A stretch of 64,000 nt of DNA, taken from the sequence record MT799840.1; one strand, written 5' to 3'. Shown here piece after piece: positions 1 through 20,029 of this stretch. A program made the position numbers and the translations under genes. Position 1 is the first letter of the stretch; each line of letters begins with the position of its first letter. The notes beneath the pieces are model-generated. The model saw only the letters and a list, made by a program, of their open reading frames with translations, made no database searches and was not told the origin of the DNA.

Positions 1-351
1 TATTAAGATCTTAAAACGCGTGCGGGCGCGCGCGTGATCCTTATTAAGAGATCGTGATCGGACGGAAGACCGAGATCGGGTACCCTGTGTATTTTTTACG
101 TGGTTTCCCTATCGTGTGTTCAGACCACCACTCGATGTCCAAAAACCCATAGCTTCGGTGGTCGCCTCCCTGGTCGGTAGACTCTGACAAGTCGACCCAC
201 AACACCAACCCGTCCGGGGACGGATTTTTATTCCAACGACAAGCTCCACGAAAATCCCCGCAGAGGGACTCACTGCTGTGTGACTCACCGGCTCCTGGAC
301 GCCTACGCCTCGAGCCGGTAATTTTTTGATTACGTGAGTTTGTTGTTATAT

Positions 352-935
352 GCGAATAGCGATTGACCGCGCCAATGGTCCAATCACTTTTAAACCCTGC
401 ACGCTAGGGCTCCAAGTCCTGGGATTGTTACCCAGGACGCTTTTTCGAAAATACCTGCCGTGGTGTCTTCGACAAAGCGCAATCTAACACTGCGTGATTT
501 ATTATGTTCTGGAAAACTTTCGCCGTGGAACAGAACCGGTGAGCGTCGGCGGGGAATCCGACAATCACCACCCATTCAGGTACTCGGTAGATAACCGACC
601 TGCCGACGGTGCTACGTCGGGCGTAGTTCGGTTTGCGAGAGTGTCGAGAAAGTCGACTGCGCACCCATGACAAAATCCGAGTTGACCGTGGCAGCGCCAG
701 AGGACTGGGCAGCGGAGAGACGTCGTTGAACTTACCTCCGATAGTTATCGCTGATTCCGCTCTGGCGTCGGGCCAAAACTGATTCGAATTCGGCGTTGCG
801 TCGAAAAGGGGTCTGCGTGTAGAACCGCAGACTTGGGGGATAACTCCAAAGTGGGGTGATCGGATCTTGACGGCTCGGAACAGACGAGAGGGGTGGGTAC
901 TCCCGTTGTGAAACGCCAGTACCTGGCTGATTAAA
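352..935 (+). ncRNA. Candidate large structured non-coding RNA (block A)
   Basis: No convincing ORF. At least 8 stems read by eye (416-423/431-438, 506-511/531-536, 538-542/565-569, 577-581/598-602, 695-702/760-767, 811-817/826-832, long-range 468-483/795-805). Preceded by TATG at 349-352. Confidence 0.45.
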
Positions 936-984
936 ATTTACAGATTCTGCGTGAGGTATGATAAACCAAACGGAGAATTAAATC

Positions 985-1560
985 ATGAACTTGTATCGCA
1001 TCGGGTTTTACCGGAACGAGGTACCAGAATCGGTTTTGGTTGTCTTAGCCGAAAACGAGGAGCATGCCAAATCCTTCTGGCCGGTTAGCGCAGAGCGTCC
1101 AGCGGTTGCGTGCTGCTACGACGGTCCAGTTGCCGCAACGGATGTCGCTGCAGGCGTAGTCCTGAAGATGGGCCGATGGGAAGATTACTCCCATCCCGGT
1201 TTGGAGTTTGTTTCCGAACCTGCCAGACATTCCTGGGAATTTCCCTCAGGCAACACCGAGACGTATTTCGGATTTCAGGTTAAACAACCTTCGACGCTCA
1301 AACTGTACCTGGTGTACAGCGACGCCGCTACCGAAGACTACGTCGATTCCGGAATCATCGTCGGGGCAACAACCCCTGCTGCGGCATTCGCACATTGGGA
1401 CGGTGATAAACCCGGAATCGTTTCGGTCTGTGAGCTACCACTTGAAGCCGGTTTGGTTACGAACATCAAGTGTGAGCAAGGCCAGGAGCTGACTTGGATC
1501 CGCCAGGATTACCTGACGGAAACGACATTCGAGTACACACCGAGGAAGGTGACCCAATGA
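985..1560 (+). CDS. Hypothetical protein with two tandem copies of a small phage domain
   Basis: 191-aa ORF with GGAG RBS. Halves begin MNLYRIGF..VLVVLAENEEHA and LKLYLVYS..SGIIVGATTPAAA. Confidence 0.75.
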   Translation: MNLYRIGFYRNEVPESVLVVLAENEEHAKSFWPVSAERPAVACCYDGPVAATDVAAGVVLKMGRWEDYSHPGLEFVSEPARHSWEFPSGNTETYFGFQVKQPSTLKLYLVYSDAATEDYVDSGIIVGATTPAAAFAHWDGDKPGIVSVCELPLEAGLVTNIKCEQGQELTWIRQDYLTETTFEYTPRKVTQ

Positions 1561-2048
1561 CGACGATAGCGTTCGACGGAAAAGTCTTAGCTGCTGACGG
1601 CCAGTTAACCCGTGGGTCGAATATCTGCAACCTGAATACCCAGAAGTTATTCGTCTGTCCTCCTGACGAGGAATGGTGGATTACTGGTGAACGGATTGTG
1701 GCGTTCGGAGTAAGTGGTGATATCACAGGACAGTTGGCCCTGCTGGAAACTGTCCGCTTGAGACCCGGCTACAAGGGGTTAACGCAAAGCTCGCAGTTAC
1801 CTGCGAAGATGGATTTTACTTTCCTGATGCTTCTGGCCTCAGGGAAAGCGATAGTCGGTGGGAAGCGTGAAGACGACGTGTCGTTGTGGTGGAGTGAAGC
1901 CACACCACCTCTGGCAACCGGAAGCGGTTACGAGTACGCGTTGGGTGCGATGAAGATGGGCGCGAATGCGGTTCGTGCTGTTGAGATTGCGTCCGAATGC
2001 GATATCTACACCGGTGGTGAGATTAGCACTTACGAACTACGGAGGTGA
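1557..2048 (+). CDS. HslV/proteasome-beta-like Ntn hydrolase
   Basis: True start is ATG 1557 (ATGA overlap, GAGGAAGG RBS), giving MTTIAFDGKVLAAD. Also TGSGYEYALGAM and DIYTGG motifs typical of the N-terminal Thr protease fold. Confidence 0.75.
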   Translation: MTTIAFDGKVLAADGQLTRGSNICNLNTQKLFVCPPDEEWWITGERIVAFGVSGDITGQLALLETVRLRPGYKGLTQSSQLPAKMDFTFLMLLASGKAIVGGKREDDVSLWWSEATPPLATGSGYEYALGAMKMGANAVRAVEIASECDIYTGGEISTYELRR

Positions 2049-2051
2049 ATC

Positions 2052-2102
2052 ATGCGGGAGTCAGAAGCACGCAAGCTTGACCCCATCAATCGCCTGCGAT
2101 AA
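2052..2102 (+). CDS. Possible 16-aa micropeptide MRESEARKLDPINRLR
   Basis: Strong SD GGAGGTG at 2041-2047, ATG 2052, TAA 2100-2102. Alternatively the segment is a structured RNA leader. Confidence 0.3.
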   Translation: MRESEARKLDPINRLR

Positions 2103-2141
2103 CGGGGTAGCGCATCCGTATAAACACGTTTAAAGAATTCT

Positions 2142-2217
2142 GGGGGTATGGCGCAATTGGTAGCGCACCGGTCTCCAAAACCGAAGGTTCGAGGTTCGAA
2201 ACCTCGTGCCCCCGCCA
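2142..2217 (+). tRNA. trnW: tRNA-Trp (CCA)
   Basis: Full cloverleaf: acceptor GGGGGTA/TGCCCCC, anticodon loop CTCCAAA, GGTTCGAAACC T-arm, encoded 3' CCA. Confidence 0.95.
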
Positions 2218-2281
2218 CATTTAGCCAACGAATTCAGGTTCAACACAGAAGACACAGATTTGTCAACTGTTGGAGAACAAC

Positions 2282-2524
2282 ATGAATTTGTACTTGCTAG
2301 AACGAACTGACGATATCGGGTATGATGAATTTGATTCCATAATCGTGGCGGCTCCTACGGAGCAAGCCGCGTGTGCAATTCCTCCCGACCGTGGTCATTG
2401 GATGGACTGCCGCTGGTTACCGAAAGAGCGCTGGGATGAAGGGCTTACCCTGACCGTTACTCTTATCGGTACTACGCACTATCCTGCTGGGACCGTCGTT
2501 CATGAATCGTTCAATGCTGGCTAA
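2282..2524 (+). CDS. Small hypothetical protein, same domain family as 985-1560
   Basis: GGAG RBS at 2272-2275. Sequence MNLYLLERTDDIGYDEFDSIIVAAPTEQAA. Confidence 0.75.
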   Translation: MNLYLLERTDDIGYDEFDSIIVAAPTEQAACAIPPDRGHWMDCRWLPKERWDEGLTLTVTLIGTTHYPAGTVVHESFNAG

Positions 2525-2526
2525 AC

Positions 2527-2544
2527 AGTGGGCTTCGGCCCACT
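2527..2544 (+). terminator. UUCG stem-loop after CDS (no U-tract)
   Basis: AGTGGGC-TTCG-GCCCACT. Confidence 0.45.
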
Positions 2545-2731
2545 AACCCTATTCGAGCCGTGATACTTACTCAGATTGTGCGGGTTGATGTCCCGCATGA
2601 GCCGGTAGTAGCTTAGACCTACGGTAGACCAATAAATCCGTAGCAGCCAGGTACACAAAGCACCAGGTCGCTTGTACAGGATGCTGGGTATCTGACCGGT
2701 CATAACCTCATTCGATACGAGACACGTTTAT

Positions 2732-3299
2732 GCATGAAATACTCCAGTACATCAGGATGTTGATTTCCAACATCCGGTTCTGGGTATTCAGTCATGTTTG
2801 GTTTACAGGCGATGGGTTTTCCCGCAAGGGCCCCACTTACAGACTGGCGTCTCCACGACAACCGTCCCTAGGGGACAGGCAAGCACCGGCCCATTAAGCC
2901 GCTACGCTACGCCTGTAAATCCACAATTTGATAACCGAATGGGATTGAGTTCCCAGTGTTAGGGTGACTGTGTGTCACCGTAGGCGCGGTACCTCATACG
3001 GCCGGTACGCCACGAATGTACGTGATAGCGGGTGGTGCTTGGAGGCGCTAAGACCTGACCTTGCGGCCAGGCTCAGAAGAAGAAGTCCATCACCTGCATT
3101 CAGGAATGAATTTAGGTTAATTATTGGAAGTGGCGAAATCACTTACGTGATAACTTAGTAGTATGCAACGAACAATACCAGAGTGACTTTACGAGGTTAC
3201 TGTGGTATATGTCGGTGCGCCGGGCAACGTGTTGCCGCAGATAGGCCCGAGGGAGCTGAGTGCATTAACACACGCCGGGATGCACCGGCACCTTACAAT
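2732..3299 (+). ncRNA. Candidate structured non-coding RNA(s) (block B)
   Basis: Stems 2755-2762/2768-2775, 2802-2811/2910-2919, 2864-2868/2872-2876, 2940-2944/2951-2955, 2963-2968/2974-2979, 3028-3037/3088-3097. GNRA loops (GCAA, GGAA). TATG at 2729-2732. Confidence 0.45.
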
Positions 3300-3300
3300 G

Positions 3301-3367
3301 GCTTTGTAGCTCAGGTAGGTAGAGCAGCCTCTTTGAGGAAGGTCGCCGGTTCGAGACCGGTCAAAGC
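3301..3367 (+). pseudogene. tRNA-like element with collapsed anticodon arm
   Basis: Canonical D-arm (GCTC..GAGC), T-arm (GCCGG TTCGAGA CCGGT) and a 6-bp acceptor. The anticodon arm is 13 nt with a 3-nt TTT loop, and no CCA is encoded. Confidence 0.7.
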
Positions 3368-3369
3368 AA

Positions 3370-3444
3370 GAGCAGCGAAGTTAGAGGAATTAACACCCGA
3401 CTCATAATCGGATATTTCGACGGTTCGAATCCGTCCGTTTGCTC
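3370..3444 (+). tRNA. Degenerate tRNA with CAT anticodon (Met or Ile2)
   Basis: Anticodon arm CCGA-CTCATAA-TCGG and T-arm GACGG-TTCGAAT-CCGTC. Acceptor stem has a bulge, position 8 is A, and no CCA follows directly. Confidence 0.6.
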
Positions 3445-3451
3445 GTCCCAT

Positions 3452-3785
3452 TTGTGTTATCCTTATCCCGAAGGCATTCGAAATAAGACGCGTATCCACA
3501 CACGGGTCAAGGGTAACACGAACCACTTCCGCGGTCACCGTGTCCATTGCCGCCTACCTGCATGGGCTGTCCTCCGACACGGTGACTTCGGGCCAACTTA
3601 CAGGCCAGGGCCGTTTGGGTTTTTCTTACGCATCCATCCAGAGCCACCTCGCGCCCTAGTCTGTATACCCCTTTTCTGTTCCTGGTTTGCCAACTAAATC
3701 AATTAAGCCTGGTGCGTTGCCCTGGGAACAGAAAAACTTATTCGGTTACACGCCGAACCCACCCACGAGGGATATGTCGTGGACT
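3452..3785 (+). ncRNA. Candidate structured non-coding RNA (block C)
   Basis: Stems 3454-3462/3511-3519, perfect 11-bp 3534-3544/3576-3586, perfect 11-bp 3672-3682/3725-3735, and 3763-3768/3777-3782. Confidence 0.4.
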
Positions 3786-3824
3786 ACCAATAGAAGCAGC
3801 AATAGTAGTAAGAAGGAAAGCAAC

Positions 3825-4646
3825 ATGTTTACAGTTAAACGTGTGATTGATGGTGACCGTATCATTACCGAACATGAAAAGGTTCGTATCGGTGACCGTA
3901 AGTCTCGTGTATTCCGCGAGGCATTAAAAATGCTCGAGAACGAGCGATTCGACATTGTTGTCGATGATGAAAAGTTAGCCCTTAATCCGGGGTTAAAACG
4001 CGTTGCCCCTGATGTGCCTGATCCGATTACAAAGCACCCGTCCGATTATTACAGTTGGGTGACTCGAATGCAAGAAGATCAAAAATCGGGTCATCTGTAT
4101 CTGAAACAGCTTTTCCCTAATCTTGTTATTCCCGACTTGGACGACATTGAGCTGTTTAACTGCAATGTGCGTGACTTTATCAGCTATGTGCTGGATGATA
4201 AAGGTAATGCTGTTCTGATACTGGAGACGGGTTCACGTATACCCGATGCTGTGGATAACATTTGTGGTGAAATCGTTGGTTACGGTACACCCCCAGAGAA
4301 ATTAGGTTGGTACAAACCGTCGCCTGATAGCGATATGGCGATTATTGTCTACACTCAGGAAGAACTGCAACAAGTCGAATTAGAGCCTGGTCCATCTATC
4401 GAGTTCACTGATGTCCAGGAACACTCACAATGGGTTAATGGTGAATGCGTTGTTACTGTTTTAAAAGGCGCTCGCCCTGGCGACCGGTCAGTCGATGAAC
4501 TGATTGGCGCAATGTGCATCGAAGAAGAATCTGGATACGATCCTGATAACCAGATCAGTGCCGGTGCGTTGTACGAACTGTTTTATAAAGGCGACGAAGT
4601 CTACGTGGTTAACTCTCACGGTAAGACTACCGACGCCCTTCGCTGA
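3825..4646 (+). CDS. Hypothetical protein
   Basis: Start reassigned to ATG 3825 (AAGGAAAG RBS; MFTVKRVIDG). The upstream in-frame extension overlaps the structured block. Confidence 0.8.
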   Translation: MFTVKRVIDGDRIITEHEKVRIGDRKSRVFREALKMLENERFDIVVDDEKLALNPGLKRVAPDVPDPITKHPSDYYSWVTRMQEDQKSGHLYLKQLFPNLVIPDLDDIELFNCNVRDFISYVLDDKGNAVLILETGSRIPDAVDNICGEIVGYGTPPEKLGWYKPSPDSDMAIIVYTQEELQQVELEPGPSIEFTDVQEHSQWVNGECVVTVLKGARPGDRSVDELIGAMCIEEESGYDPDNQISAGALYELFYKGDEVYVVNSHGKTTDALR

Positions 4647-18077: not shown

Positions 18078-20029
18078 GTGAGAAAGGTACCAAAATTCTA
18101 CGGAATATCCGGCCGGTTGGTTAGTCAGGATAACTATTTGTCCGATTTGCAAATAGAAGCTGCTGCCAAAGGTATTAAACCACCCACTATTATTAACGAT
18201 GTCGCCGTTAACGGGGATGCGATCGAGGTTGCTGAACTTATCGATCGCATGGTACAGAACAGAATCGTTGACGAAGAACTGAACTCTGCACCGATTTGTA
18301 GTTTGGATTGTCCGGCACCGATCGCGCATCGTTACAATCTCGGTTGTAAGTGTCCGACGTGTGGCTATGTTGTAACTGAACATCGAATTGAATCCGATGT
18401 CTGGTTACGTGCACCCGATGAAATGGGTAACTTCGTCAACCCACGATTCTGGGCAATGTTCAATGCTTTCTTTAATAGCAAGTTGAAGAAGTTTGAACGT
18501 AACAAGGTCACTATCGAACGCGGTAATGACTTGATGATGTGGATGATTGACCCGTATTACCGTATAGAAGAACCAGACGGTAAACGCGCACATGCTGTGA
18601 AACGTGTATTGGAAGAACATGGTTTCGTTCGTGGCTTGCGCAATCTGGTTGATAACCACGTTAGTATCTTTAACATCCTTACCACGCCAGAAGCCTGGAA
18701 GGAAATCTTCGCACCTAATCGGCATAACGCCGCTGAAGGTGAACGCTTACGTTTACAATGGAAGGAGCTATTCGAAACGCAACGTCACGCATTCTTCCCA
18801 AGACACTTACCGCTAATCTCCTCTAAACTTATCGTTACTGAGGAAGGTCGTCGTGGTGTCATGGTAGACCCAGTGTTCACGGGTGCTATTGACGCGGTGA
18901 AAAATATCGCGTTGCTCTATACGCGGCGTAAAGCGATCGAACCACGTTTTCTGATTAGTCGTGCTTTGAAAGCGAACCGTCAGTTAACGTACTTCCACAT
19001 GGACTTCCGTCGTGAGTCTATGGAAGGTAAACCGGGTGACTATCGCGCGAAATTGGGTTCCACCCATATTCCGTTCGGTGGTCGTGCAACCATCTCACCT
19101 ATCTCAGAACCACACGATGCCTGGAAGTTAAAAGCACCATGGCGTTGGATGGTTGGGTTGATGTCGACCCACATCGAGAACAAACTGCTACGACGGGGTT
19201 ATTCGTCACGGCAGTGTGAACGTATCGTTGCAAAAGCGGCAATGCAGTATGACCCGCTTGTAGATGAAATCTTTAAAGAGCTAATTCGTGAATCCCCAGG
19301 CGGTCTTGGGATCATGGTCATACCGCTACGTAACCCAACGCTGGTACAGTTGTCTATTCAGACGCTGTTCATCGACGAAGTTGTTACCGATGTTAACCAG
19401 TGTTCGCTGCGTATCTCTGACCGTGTGATCAAGATGGCTAACGGTTCGAAAAGAGCCCCATCGGACGGGAAACCTCTGATGCGTATTCTCCTGAAATGCT
19501 GGGAAACCCTAAAGCGTGTCTACCAGAAATGGGGACGAAAGTCTGAAACAACAGATACGATGGCCTACGCTAAACAATACTGCTAACGGTTGTGATAATG
19601 GGTAATCAGCAGCGAAGCCTCGTGAGAGGAACGTTCAACGACTATCGCTGAAATGCGAGTAGGGGTCCCAGTGGACTTCGAAGTGGGAGAACACCTAAGG
19701 CGATAGCTATGGTGAAGATATAGTCTGTGCCTTATCGAGAGATAAGGAGGGTGTCTTAGCACACCTGCTGTATACGGAAACGGTATACGGTGGACAAACA
19801 GGATTTCGATGGCGACCAGTTCCAGGTACGTTTGCCAGTCGATGAAACTGAGATGAAGTTGGCGCTCCAATTCCGTCCAGATAACGGCTTTATGTCTTCT
19901 ACTGATGTGGACCGCGTAGAACACGGCATGGTTTTACATAACGAGCTAATCAGTATGCAGAACCAGTTCCTTATTGAAGCAGATGAGGATGATGAAGAAG
20001 GCATTCCGTTGGAAGCGGTGATGGGCTAA
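18078..20029 (+). CDS. Non-virion RNAP beta-prime N-terminal subunit (phiKZ gp55-like), two exons 18078-19445 + 19802-20029, ~531 aa
   Basis: Zn-ribbon CSLDC..CKCPTC, MEGKPGDYRAKLG, GGRATISP and LRNPTL motifs. Splicing restores the catalytic NGDFDGD. Confidence 0.9.
19446..19801 (+). mobile_element. Group I self-splicing intron, ORF-less (356 nt)
   Basis: P AAATGCTGGGAAA 19494, Q AATCAGCAG 19604, R GTTCAACGACTA 19633, S AAGATATAGTC 19715. P1 hairpin has the U.G pair at the 5' splice site (U19445.G19455). Terminal G19801. Confidence 0.93.

Follow-up and report, generated by a model that had tools for sequence, protein, structure and literature searches.

A candidate gene for a large structured non-coding RNA of an undescribed family in nucleus-forming jumbo phages of enterobacteria

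What might be specified by a block of some 580 nucleotides in a phage genome that, according to an earlier note on the sequence, has no credible ORF and is dense in nested stems? We studied this block, positions 352-935, in a window of 64,000 nucleotides that is identical to positions 1-64000 of Salmonella phage JN03 (MT799840.1), a nucleus-forming, SPN3US-like jumbo phage of 241 kb belonging to the genus Seoulvirus. The block is part of an island of 1,770 bases devoid of ORFs, which in the linear JN03 record is divided between the two ends (240262-241047 plus window positions 1-984); hence, the window cuts the island, and 352-935 represents its last third. In phage 1252 the same island is uninterrupted (L006:2714-4483). 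Upstream it is flanked by a virion structural gene and two conserved genes, while downstream there follow a variable small gene, a gene for an HslV-family peptidase, a tRNA-Trp gene (1.2 kb downstream of the RNA, found by ARAGORN in the window) and another non-coding stretch, in which degenerate tRNA-like sequences occur; relatives of JN03 carry more tRNAs. All neighboring genes are on the plus strand, the same strand as the RNA described below. At a distance of 350 bases upstream of the RNA there is a strongly conserved AT-rich block of 120-200 bp with alternating GC repeats on either side, and many genome records begin inside this block.

The absence of a credible ORF is borne out: no reading frame in 352-935 exceeds 81 aa, the five longest ones recover no match in Pfam or PHROGs, and the small ORFs of JN03 are not conserved because relatives carry many indels that are not multiples of three. 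The small hypothetical ORFs annotated here in some GenBank records vary in position and orientation even when phiEaH2 is compared with Stratton, two phages with RNA regions that are 99.7% identical, and are best read as spurious calls. Searches with the 4227 families of Rfam 15 (cmscan) returned nothing in positions 1-1000 at the gathering score, no match in the RNA region at E<=10 when positions 1-4000 were scanned, and zero matches at E<=10 when 340-945 was scanned alone with the laxest filters; the whole island (L006) likewise gave no credible match. Rfam does find a group I intron (RF00028, 19426-19747, 68.6 bits) and tRNAs in the same window, and therefore the search works. Thus, the earlier suspicion that no family can be assigned, and that the block may represent a new class, holds at the gathering score and at E<=10. 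More specifically, the Rfam 15 covariance models of ROOL, GOLLD, HEARO, OLE and raiA do not match 352-932, RF00028 does not match in 340-945, and RNase P RNA, tmRNA, 6S, SRP RNA and tRNA have no Rfam match at the RNA; nor did ARAGORN report a tmRNA or tRNA there, its output being limited to the tRNA-Trp. No interrupted gene was seen around 352-932, a direct-repeat search found neither iterons nor repeat arrays inside it, and the 64-kb window shows no enrichment of the reverse complements of the invariant loops, giving no sign of antisense targets there. In the literature on SPN3US, on structured RNAs of jumbo phages and on ncRNAs of the Chimalliviridae we found no description of this RNA. The segment ACAGAACCGG (528-537), which we take to resemble the CR-V motif of RNase P, was also considered in this light and dismissed, the segment being missing in Machinavirus and the Rfam RNase P models being silent.

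The whole island is 67-72% identical in Salmonella phage SPAsTU and Erwinia phage pEa_SNUABM_29 (pEa29) by blastn and profile searches, and large parts of it are present in Erskinevirus (Asesino, phiEaH2, Stratton), Machinavirus (Caitlin, ChrisDB, Huxley, pEa_SNUABM_4, pEa_SNUABM_9) and Wellingtonvirus (Kwan, Wellington). Motif scans of IMG/VR and metagenomes added further distinct relatives (L018, L021, L029, L051 and L068), and a search of E. coli genomes uncovered a fifth lineage, represented by a circular replicon of 222 kb that is listed as a plasmid (NZ_CP173450.1), with which four IMG/VR contigs of 151-225 kb group. Exact-pattern scans of metagenome and genome collections yielded mostly chance matches in unrelated GC-rich contexts, as checked by eye and with the model, and a looser two-anchor pattern recovered 69 loci, among which the real ones were contigs of known lineages only. 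The covariance model R1 (see below) finds exactly one copy in the window. At the nucleotide level the RNA of JN03 is 75% identical to that of SPAsTU and 72% to that of pEa29. Between JN03 and SPAsTU the tRNA-Trp is 74% identical, the conserved upstream genes 75-85%, and the adjacent HslV gene ~55% (38% at the protein level); the RNA is as conserved as tRNA-Trp and the core upstream genes, and more so than HslV. Its length ranges from ~581 nt in JN03 and 548 nt in Asesino to ~416 nt in Huxley-type phages, following a modular pattern in which invariant blocks alternate with hairpins of varying sequence and length, with some lineages adding whole hairpins.

In terms of folding energy, 352-935 has an MFE z-score of -3.4 on the plus strand and -3.1 on the minus strand relative to dinucleotide shuffles, with none of 100 shuffles being as stable; the homologues from a Huxley-type phage and Asesino score -4.0 and -2.9. 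For the whole RNA we used an anchored alignment of 16 sequences with an RNAalifold consensus of 106 pairs, along with slid controls in which the 3' partners were shifted by 1-3 columns. The consensus pairs are canonical in 91.6% of the cells (35-46% when slid), and 46 of the 106 show changes on both sides (11-15 when slid). The model R1 of the 3' domain, built from 18 sequences, aligns 22 distinct ones; here 97.1% of the cells are paired against 36-49% in slid controls, 14 of 38 pairs have both-side changes against 1-6, and the covariation score is 0.380 against <=0.089, values that none of 500 shuffles reach. Double-sided changes in helices 2 and 3 of this domain are seen in model R1 and in alignments A2 and A3. 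Two of the points raised in the earlier note, covariation across relatives and a folding energy better than that of shuffled sequences, are thus borne out. Further, G-U cells outnumber A-C cells by 253:25, as opposed to ~1.5-2.2 to 1 in the slid controls, and therefore the functional molecule resides on the plus strand; the GNRA and GAAA loops also read correctly on this strand only.

The best-supported helices are: 1) in the 5' part, 416-423/431-438, 439-455/462-478, 506-511/531-536, 538-542/565-569 with 545-549/558-562, and 582-588/676-682; and 2) in the 3' part, 689-692/772-775, 694-702/760-768, the hairpin around the loop 728-736, 789-795/799-805, 810-820/824-833 and 894-907/912-925. The invariant unpaired elements comprise CCUAACAC (483-490), UUCAGGU (575-581), GAACUUACC (728-736), GUGUAGAACC (817-826), the 3' core 864-893 and GCUGA 926-930. 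All complementarities listed in the earlier note are present in the JN03 sequence, and the phylogenetic comparison supports 416-423/431-438, 506-511/531-536, 538-542/565-569 with 545-549/558-562, 695-702/760-767 and 811-817/826-832. The stem 577-581/598-602 is not kept in relatives, its 3' arm lying in a variable insert, and the conserved closing helix at this place is 582-588/676-682. Similarly, the long-range helix 468-483/795-805, thought to close ~320 nt, has to be given up, as both of its arms belong to covarying local helices, 439-455/462-478 and 789-795/799-805. On these comparative grounds we show that 352-932 specifies a plus-strand structured RNA, evidently under strong purifying selection, with modular expansions and invariant loops and junctions. 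The earlier observation of a non-coding, densely structured RNA is thereby confirmed, and its interpretation is likewise upheld, with the exception of one helix and the promoter class. The elements of the locus are collected in Table 1.

Table 1. Features of the RNA locus and its flanks, in window coordinates
Feature	Position	Strand	Basis or remark
Terminator-like hairpin CACCGGCTC...GAGCCGGT followed by AATTTTTT	286-327	+	Sequence; would close an upstream small transcription unit just before P1
Predicted promoter P1: GATTAC 328-333, 15-base spacer, TATG 349-352	328-352	+	Probable start G352
Structured non-coding RNA (proposed gene)	352-932	+	Covariation, G-U:A-C ratio, MFE z-scores, no Rfam family, single copy
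Lineage-specific 5' leader: hairpins ~359-385 and 395-409; GCUCC 409-413	352-415	+	
Conserved hairpin 416-438, then long helix 439-455/462-478 (GCUUUUUCGA...UCGACAAAGC)	416-478	+	
Conserved loop (C/U)CUAACAC on a stem of variable length and sequence	483-490	+	
Conserved UAUGUUC, then hairpins 506-536 and 538-569	499-569	+	
Conserved single-stranded AUUCAGGUAC, with UUCAGGU invariant	574-583	+	
Helix 582-588/676-682 around a hypervariable insert; JN03 insert has a GAAA-capped hairpin 643-657	582-682	+	
3' domain, closed by CCG 686-688 / CGG 871-873	685-873	+	Model R1, alignments A2 and A3
Contents of 3' domain: helix 689-702/760-775; hairpin with invariant loop GAACUUACC (728-736); hairpin 789-805 (GAAUUCGGCGUUGCGUCGAA); hairpin 810-833 (loop GUGUAGAACC); hairpin 833-851			
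Near-invariant 3' core: AUCUUGNCGGCUCGG-AA(C)-AGACGAGAGGGG, 13-14 bp hairpin 894-925, GCUGA 926-930	864-930	+	
Predicted promoter P2: AAAATTTAC 933-941, 15 bases, TATG 957-960, start G960	933-960	+	For the downstream gene; marks the 3' limit of the RNA unit

Comparison across the lineages reveals how these elements differ in constancy. Ahead of P1, the helix 287-294/312-319 of the terminator-like hairpin has two covarying pairs in Seoulvirus, and an equivalent hairpin with a T-run is present in Erskinevirus. The 5' leader is shared by Seoulvirus and Erskinevirus, which keep its hairpins with differing sequence, including the hairpin 361-385 that the earlier note had recorded as the stem 361-368/377-385; in Machinavirus and the E. 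coli lineage it is absent or replaced. Of the 16 pairs in the segment 416-478, 8 are changed on both sides among the 16 aligned sequences; in the E. coli lineage, UGUUUUUU.../...GAAAAACA takes the place of the outer stem. The CTAACAC of the next loop is invariant in 16/16 main sequences with flanking stems that differ; bases 482-485 can pair with 578-581, and every one-sided change there preserves the pairing. The two hairpins 506-536 and 538-569 constitute an expansion limited to Seoulvirus and Erskinevirus, both covarying between these genera, and are missing in Machinavirus. Compensatory changes in the helix 582-588/676-682 take the form of CUCGG/CCGAG, CUCAG/CUGAG and CUGGC/GCCGG, and the insert that it encloses varies in length and sequence even inside Seoulvirus, e.g. 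in SPFM4. The 3' core is invariant over four genera, with two bases changed in the E. coli lineage; its hairpin 894-925 bears a GNRA cap (GUGA, 908-911), has 99% of its cells paired and displays both-side changes in 8 of 13 pairs. A potential switch pairing of 576-582 with the 3' hairpin strand 919-925 was rejected, as it fails in Machinavirus.

In Pseudomonas phage phiKZ, the non-virion RNA polymerase starts transcription at the G that ends a TATG, and the middle promoters add an AAanTTACc element centered near -24 (PMC4666361). The sequences of P1 and P2 fit this middle-promoter motif, a consensus from phiKZ that we infer SPN3US-like phages to use as well. The earlier note had the RNA begin at the TATG of 349-352, which it took for a late-type signal; the TATG start stands, and the class is that of a phiKZ middle-type promoter, with TTAC ~20 bases upstream, rather than a bare late TATG. 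The same combination, a TATG with a G start and a TTAC element ~20-24 bases upstream, as in the middle and late promoters of phiKZ, recurs at 330-352, 938-960 and three other nearby non-coding sites. Expressed as TTAC-N15-T[AG]TG, the pattern occurs 5 times on the plus strand in the first 3.2 kb of the window, always in non-coding sequence (predicted starts 118, 352, 960, 3165 and 3211), against 6 times on both strands of the other 60 kb. The spacing of P1 is identical in Seoulvirus, Erskinevirus and the Huxley group, whereas P1 is absent from the equivalent place in Caitlin-type Machinavirus and in the E. coli lineage. P2 is kept in this form in Erskinevirus, Caitlin-type phages, Kwan and the E. 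coli lineage, and is absent where a gene directly follows (SPAsTU, pEa29, pEa4, pEa9, Huxley); some relatives have TGTG in place of TATG. Based on these signals, the RNA probably extends from G352 to about 930. Contigs from public RNA runs (Logan), which carry neither strand nor true ends and show presence in RNA libraries, cover 128-984 and continue into HslV and the tRNA, with DNA carry-over being possible; they yield no primary 5' end at 352. One metatranscriptome has a break between 405 and 467, and its contig depth is 6-fold higher downstream of 467 than at 130-405.

We propose, with a probability of roughly 60%, that 352-932 is the gene for a stand-alone, trans-acting structured non-coding RNA of a previously undescribed family. 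Transcription by the phage's own RNA polymerase would start at G352 from the phiKZ middle-type promoter, and the unit is predicted to end near 930, ahead of the second promoter of the same type that would serve the next gene. The comparative analysis resolves two domains in the plus-strand RNA, one on the 5' side (416-583, to which variable inserts are added) and one on the 3' side (685-930), with helices kept by compensatory changes, and its invariant unpaired elements might form tertiary contacts or a partner-binding or catalytic surface. Such an RNA is likely to act in trans during the middle or late stage of infection, whether as a ribozyme, as a scaffold for an RNP or as a self-assembling architectural RNA, and would not be a leader dedicated to a single gene. 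That the downstream gene varies in identity and has a predicted promoter of its own (P2) favors an independent function over that of a gene-specific leader. An independent unit is further supported by the conserved spacing of P1 and P2 and by the clustering of such motifs in the non-coding island. The HNH homing-endonuclease cassette inserted in Kwan and Wellington also counts for an RNA gene, and insertion of homing endonucleases is typical of highly conserved targets. Against a neat unit speak the lack of a canonical intrinsic terminator after 930, the lineages that are missing P1 or P2 and the RNA-run contigs that run on past 930, and the split gene of Kwan and Wellington means that the RNA may be dispensable or work in pieces.

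The alternative that survives best is a long structured 5' leader, i.e. a riboswitch-like element or protein-binding operator acting in cis, which would control the transcription or translation of the immediate downstream genes (the variable small gene, the HslV-like peptidase and tRNA-Trp). As expected of a leader, the 3' core stops ~25-30 bases before a ribosome-binding site in six lineages (SPAsTU, pEa29, pEa4, pEa9, Huxley and L051), no canonical intrinsic terminator was found after 930, RNA-run contigs join the RNA to the downstream genes, and an HslV-family gene always lies within ~1 kb downstream. However, in most lineages the separate promoter P2 stands between the RNA and the next gene, and the first downstream gene comes from at least four unrelated families (a 191-aa ORF, HslV itself, a 129-aa family or a 126/245-aa family, depending on the lineage). 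Moreover, HslV-family genes of 80 other viral contigs have the RNA alongside only in SPN3US itself, a non-systematic look identified no conserved alternative pairing of the ribosome-binding-site sequestration or terminator kind, and no Rfam riboswitch or leader matches an RNA that, at 410-580 nt and with multiple domains, is far larger than known leaders. We thus regard a leader as unlikely, while granting it an appreciable minority share of the probability because six lineages lack P2; in these lineages, with their near ribosome-binding site, the RNA is at least co-transcribed as a leader.

A less probable alternative is that 352-932 forms one segment of a longer precursor spanning the whole 1.77-kb island, and perhaps tRNAs; such a precursor would be transcribed from promoters further upstream and cleaved into several stable RNAs. 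Additional parts of the island on the upstream side are conserved and apparently structured (34 covarying pairs versus 9-13 when slid), its upstream half, which lies beyond the window, showing plus-strand covariation as well, and there is a promoter-like site with its predicted start at 118. Three RNA-run assemblies start at 128-142, near this site, and one contig starts at 18, preceded by letters which we take to be template-switch oligo sequence, and passes through 352. Caitlin-type phages, too, have the upstream promoter only, followed by leaky-looking hairpin/T-run sites before the conserved core. These points are outweighed by the conservation of P1 with exact spacing in three genera, by the two terminator-like hairpins with T-runs that precede it, and by the Huxley-type phages, in which P1 comes directly after the AT-rich block with no upstream unit. 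In any case, a precursor alters how the RNA is made and not what it is.

A function at the level of DNA, such as a replication origin, packaging site or protein-binding array, or an R-loop primer transcript, is very improbable. It would draw on the conserved AT-rich block with its alternating GC repeats 350 bases upstream, on the many genome records that start inside this block, and on the size and dedicated promoter of the RNA. ColE1 RNA II and the T4 origin transcripts are primer RNAs, and the RNA resembles them as a structured transcript of ~550 nt with a promoter of its own near an AT-rich region. However, a primer RNA would need the AT-rich block downstream of its promoter, whereas here the block precedes the promoter, and conserved loops and covarying helices reach the 3' end. 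Further, helices are kept by compensatory double changes, iterons and repeat arrays are lacking inside 352-932, and a DNA-level role is unlikely in view of the roughly 10:1 excess of G-U over A-C cells: this excess is strand-specific, and a function of double-stranded DNA would not be expected to produce it. Finally, a decayed gene or neutral spacer with chance stems, to which the small hypothetical ORFs annotated in some records might point, is already effectively refuted by the inconsistent place and strand of these ORFs, the lack of family matches for those of JN03, conservation equal to that of core genes, and covariation far above the controls.

Returning to the proposed stand-alone RNA, its closest counterparts are large structured phage RNAs of unknown function, among which it represents a new family that shows no detectable homology with those described so far. 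ROOL and GOLLD are large ornate RNAs of phages and prophages, ~400-800 nt in length, which are encoded near tRNA genes, have no known biochemical function and assemble into homo-oligomeric cages as seen by cryo-EM. The likeness to these drawn in the earlier note holds as an analogy only: the RNA shares with them the size class, phage origin, proximity to tRNA genes and many helices with conserved loops and junctions, a likeness of context and not evidence of homology. Unlike them, it matches neither model at E<=10 and has no motifs in common with either; its hosts are enterobacterial nucleus-forming jumbo phages, and it has its own predicted promoter of the phage-polymerase type. The stable RNAs of the phage T4 tRNA cluster (species 1 and 2) are ~120-140 nt long, processed from a tRNA precursor and of unknown function; they are comparable as phage-encoded non-coding RNAs in an island of tRNAs and non-coding sequence, but the RNA of JN03 is four times larger, multi-domain and apparently under its own promoter. 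A group I intron would likewise be a large structured phage RNA, and the Kwan and Wellington copies harbor a homing-endonuclease gene, but RF00028 is silent in 340-945, and the HNH cassette has its own terminator and ribosome-binding site, leaving no room for a ribozyme.

Large multi-domain ncRNAs with strong covariation are rare, and the few known classes are ribozymes, RNP cores or self-assembling particles. Phages of the Chimalliviridae type construct a nucleus of protein and possess a transcription machinery of their own, and to our knowledge almost nothing has been reported on their ncRNAs; the present RNA equals core genes in its degree of conservation in at least five lineages of these jumbo phages. 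As a tentative further step, possible but short of probable, we suggest that it is the founding member of a new class of large RNAs needed by nucleus-forming enterobacterial jumbo phages: a ribozyme, or the core of an RNP or self-assembling RNA particle, in which the invariant loops and 3' core would serve as active or binding site and which the phage polymerase might make inside the phage nucleus. In practical terms, the RNA is a defined and testable object: it has a probable start (G352) and a probable end (near 930), and both a covariance model and a list of its invariant loops have been drawn up. It also bears on annotation, as several GenBank records call spurious small ORFs in the RNA region and the cut point of many lies within the same non-coding island.

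In Kwan and Wellington, the RNA gene is interrupted by a cassette of ~600 bases, which separates the body of the 3' domain from the invariant core and contains its own hairpin/T-run, a ribosome-binding site and the HNH endonuclease ORF; L029 and L021 are relatives without this HNH interruption.

In Kwan and Wellington the gene for the large RNA is interrupted by a cassette of ~600 bases, which separates the invariant 3' core from the body of the 3' domain and carries its own hairpin and T-run, a ribosome-binding site and an ORF for an HNH endonuclease; the RNA sequence on either side is otherwise intact. This arrangement looks like a free-standing homing endonuclease that has the conserved RNA gene as its target, and in these two phages the large RNA is either split or else disabled.

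Within the ORF-free island that spans the ends of the JN03 record, the piece with the widest conservation is an AT-rich block, which comprises 120 bp of nearly pure A+T (~200 bp in the E. coli lineage), has direct repeats of alternating GCGTGCGCG on both flanks and contains the start point of many GenBank records of these phages. One contig assembled from public RNA libraries has its first base at window 18, preceded by extra letters that resemble a template-switch oligo sequence. An early promoter region is one possible role for the block, an origin another. Downstream of it, a promoter-like site precedes a conserved segment of ~110-210 nt that contains GACUCUGACAAGUCGACC; contigs from three RNA runs start at window 128-142. 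Window 92-232, or the stretch extending to 327, may be a small RNA unit; in Caitlin-type phages its counterpart is fused to the large RNA. The upstream half of the island, which lies outside the window (L006:2790-3330 in phage 1252, equivalent to JN03 240340-240880), is also conserved in four genera. On the + strand it displays 34 covarying pairs, as against 9-13 in slid controls, and a G-U:A-C ratio of 150:22. This half of the island has a terminator-like hairpin at its end and may represent a second large structured RNA.

Features of the window and of related loci
Feature	Location	Details
AT-rich block	L006:3360-3545 (window about -140..45)	right edge at window 1-45
Promoter-like site	TTAC 96-99, TGTG 115-118	predicted start 118; sequence motif
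Two hairpin/T-run sites	210-232 and 286-327	follow the promoter-like site, as does the conserved GACUCUGACAAGUCGACC segment
191-aa ORF	985-1560	between predicted middle-type promoter P2 and HslV gene
Second ORF-free stretch	2525-3690	
Group I intron	19426-19747	RF00028, 68.6 bits, E 2.6e-15
HNH cassette locus in RNA gene, Kwan	L010:3403-3912	
HNH cassette locus in RNA gene, Wellington	L028:12373-12990	
Uninterrupted relatives	L029:3805-4240(-), L021:1686-2120(-)	
E. coli replicon locus (L153)	NZ_CP173450.1 148804-155055	222-kb circular replicon, plasmid entry, urinary isolate

The 191-aa ORF, which has no match in PHROG, is an insertion/deletion polymorphism: it is missing from SPN3US and MET_P1_082_240, and in three RNA runs from strains without it the contigs connect 984 straight to 1557. 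The second ORF-free stretch includes two further TTAC-N15-TATG sites (predicted starts 3165 and 3211) and weak tRNA-like matches at 3300-3369 (37 bits) and 3372-3443 (31 bits), at which ARAGORN called no tRNA; the corresponding region of SPAsTU encodes six intact tRNAs. Contig depth in one RNA run peaks at window 2282-2951.

Around the island, the gene order of the E. coli replicon is that of these jumbo phages, namely a structural gene, a conserved gene, a 2-kb non-coding island with the RNA, an HslV-like gene and a tRNA. The replicon is probably a jumbo phage genome borne in or with the culture. Further downstream in JN03, one peripheral loop of the group I intron carries a long insertion.
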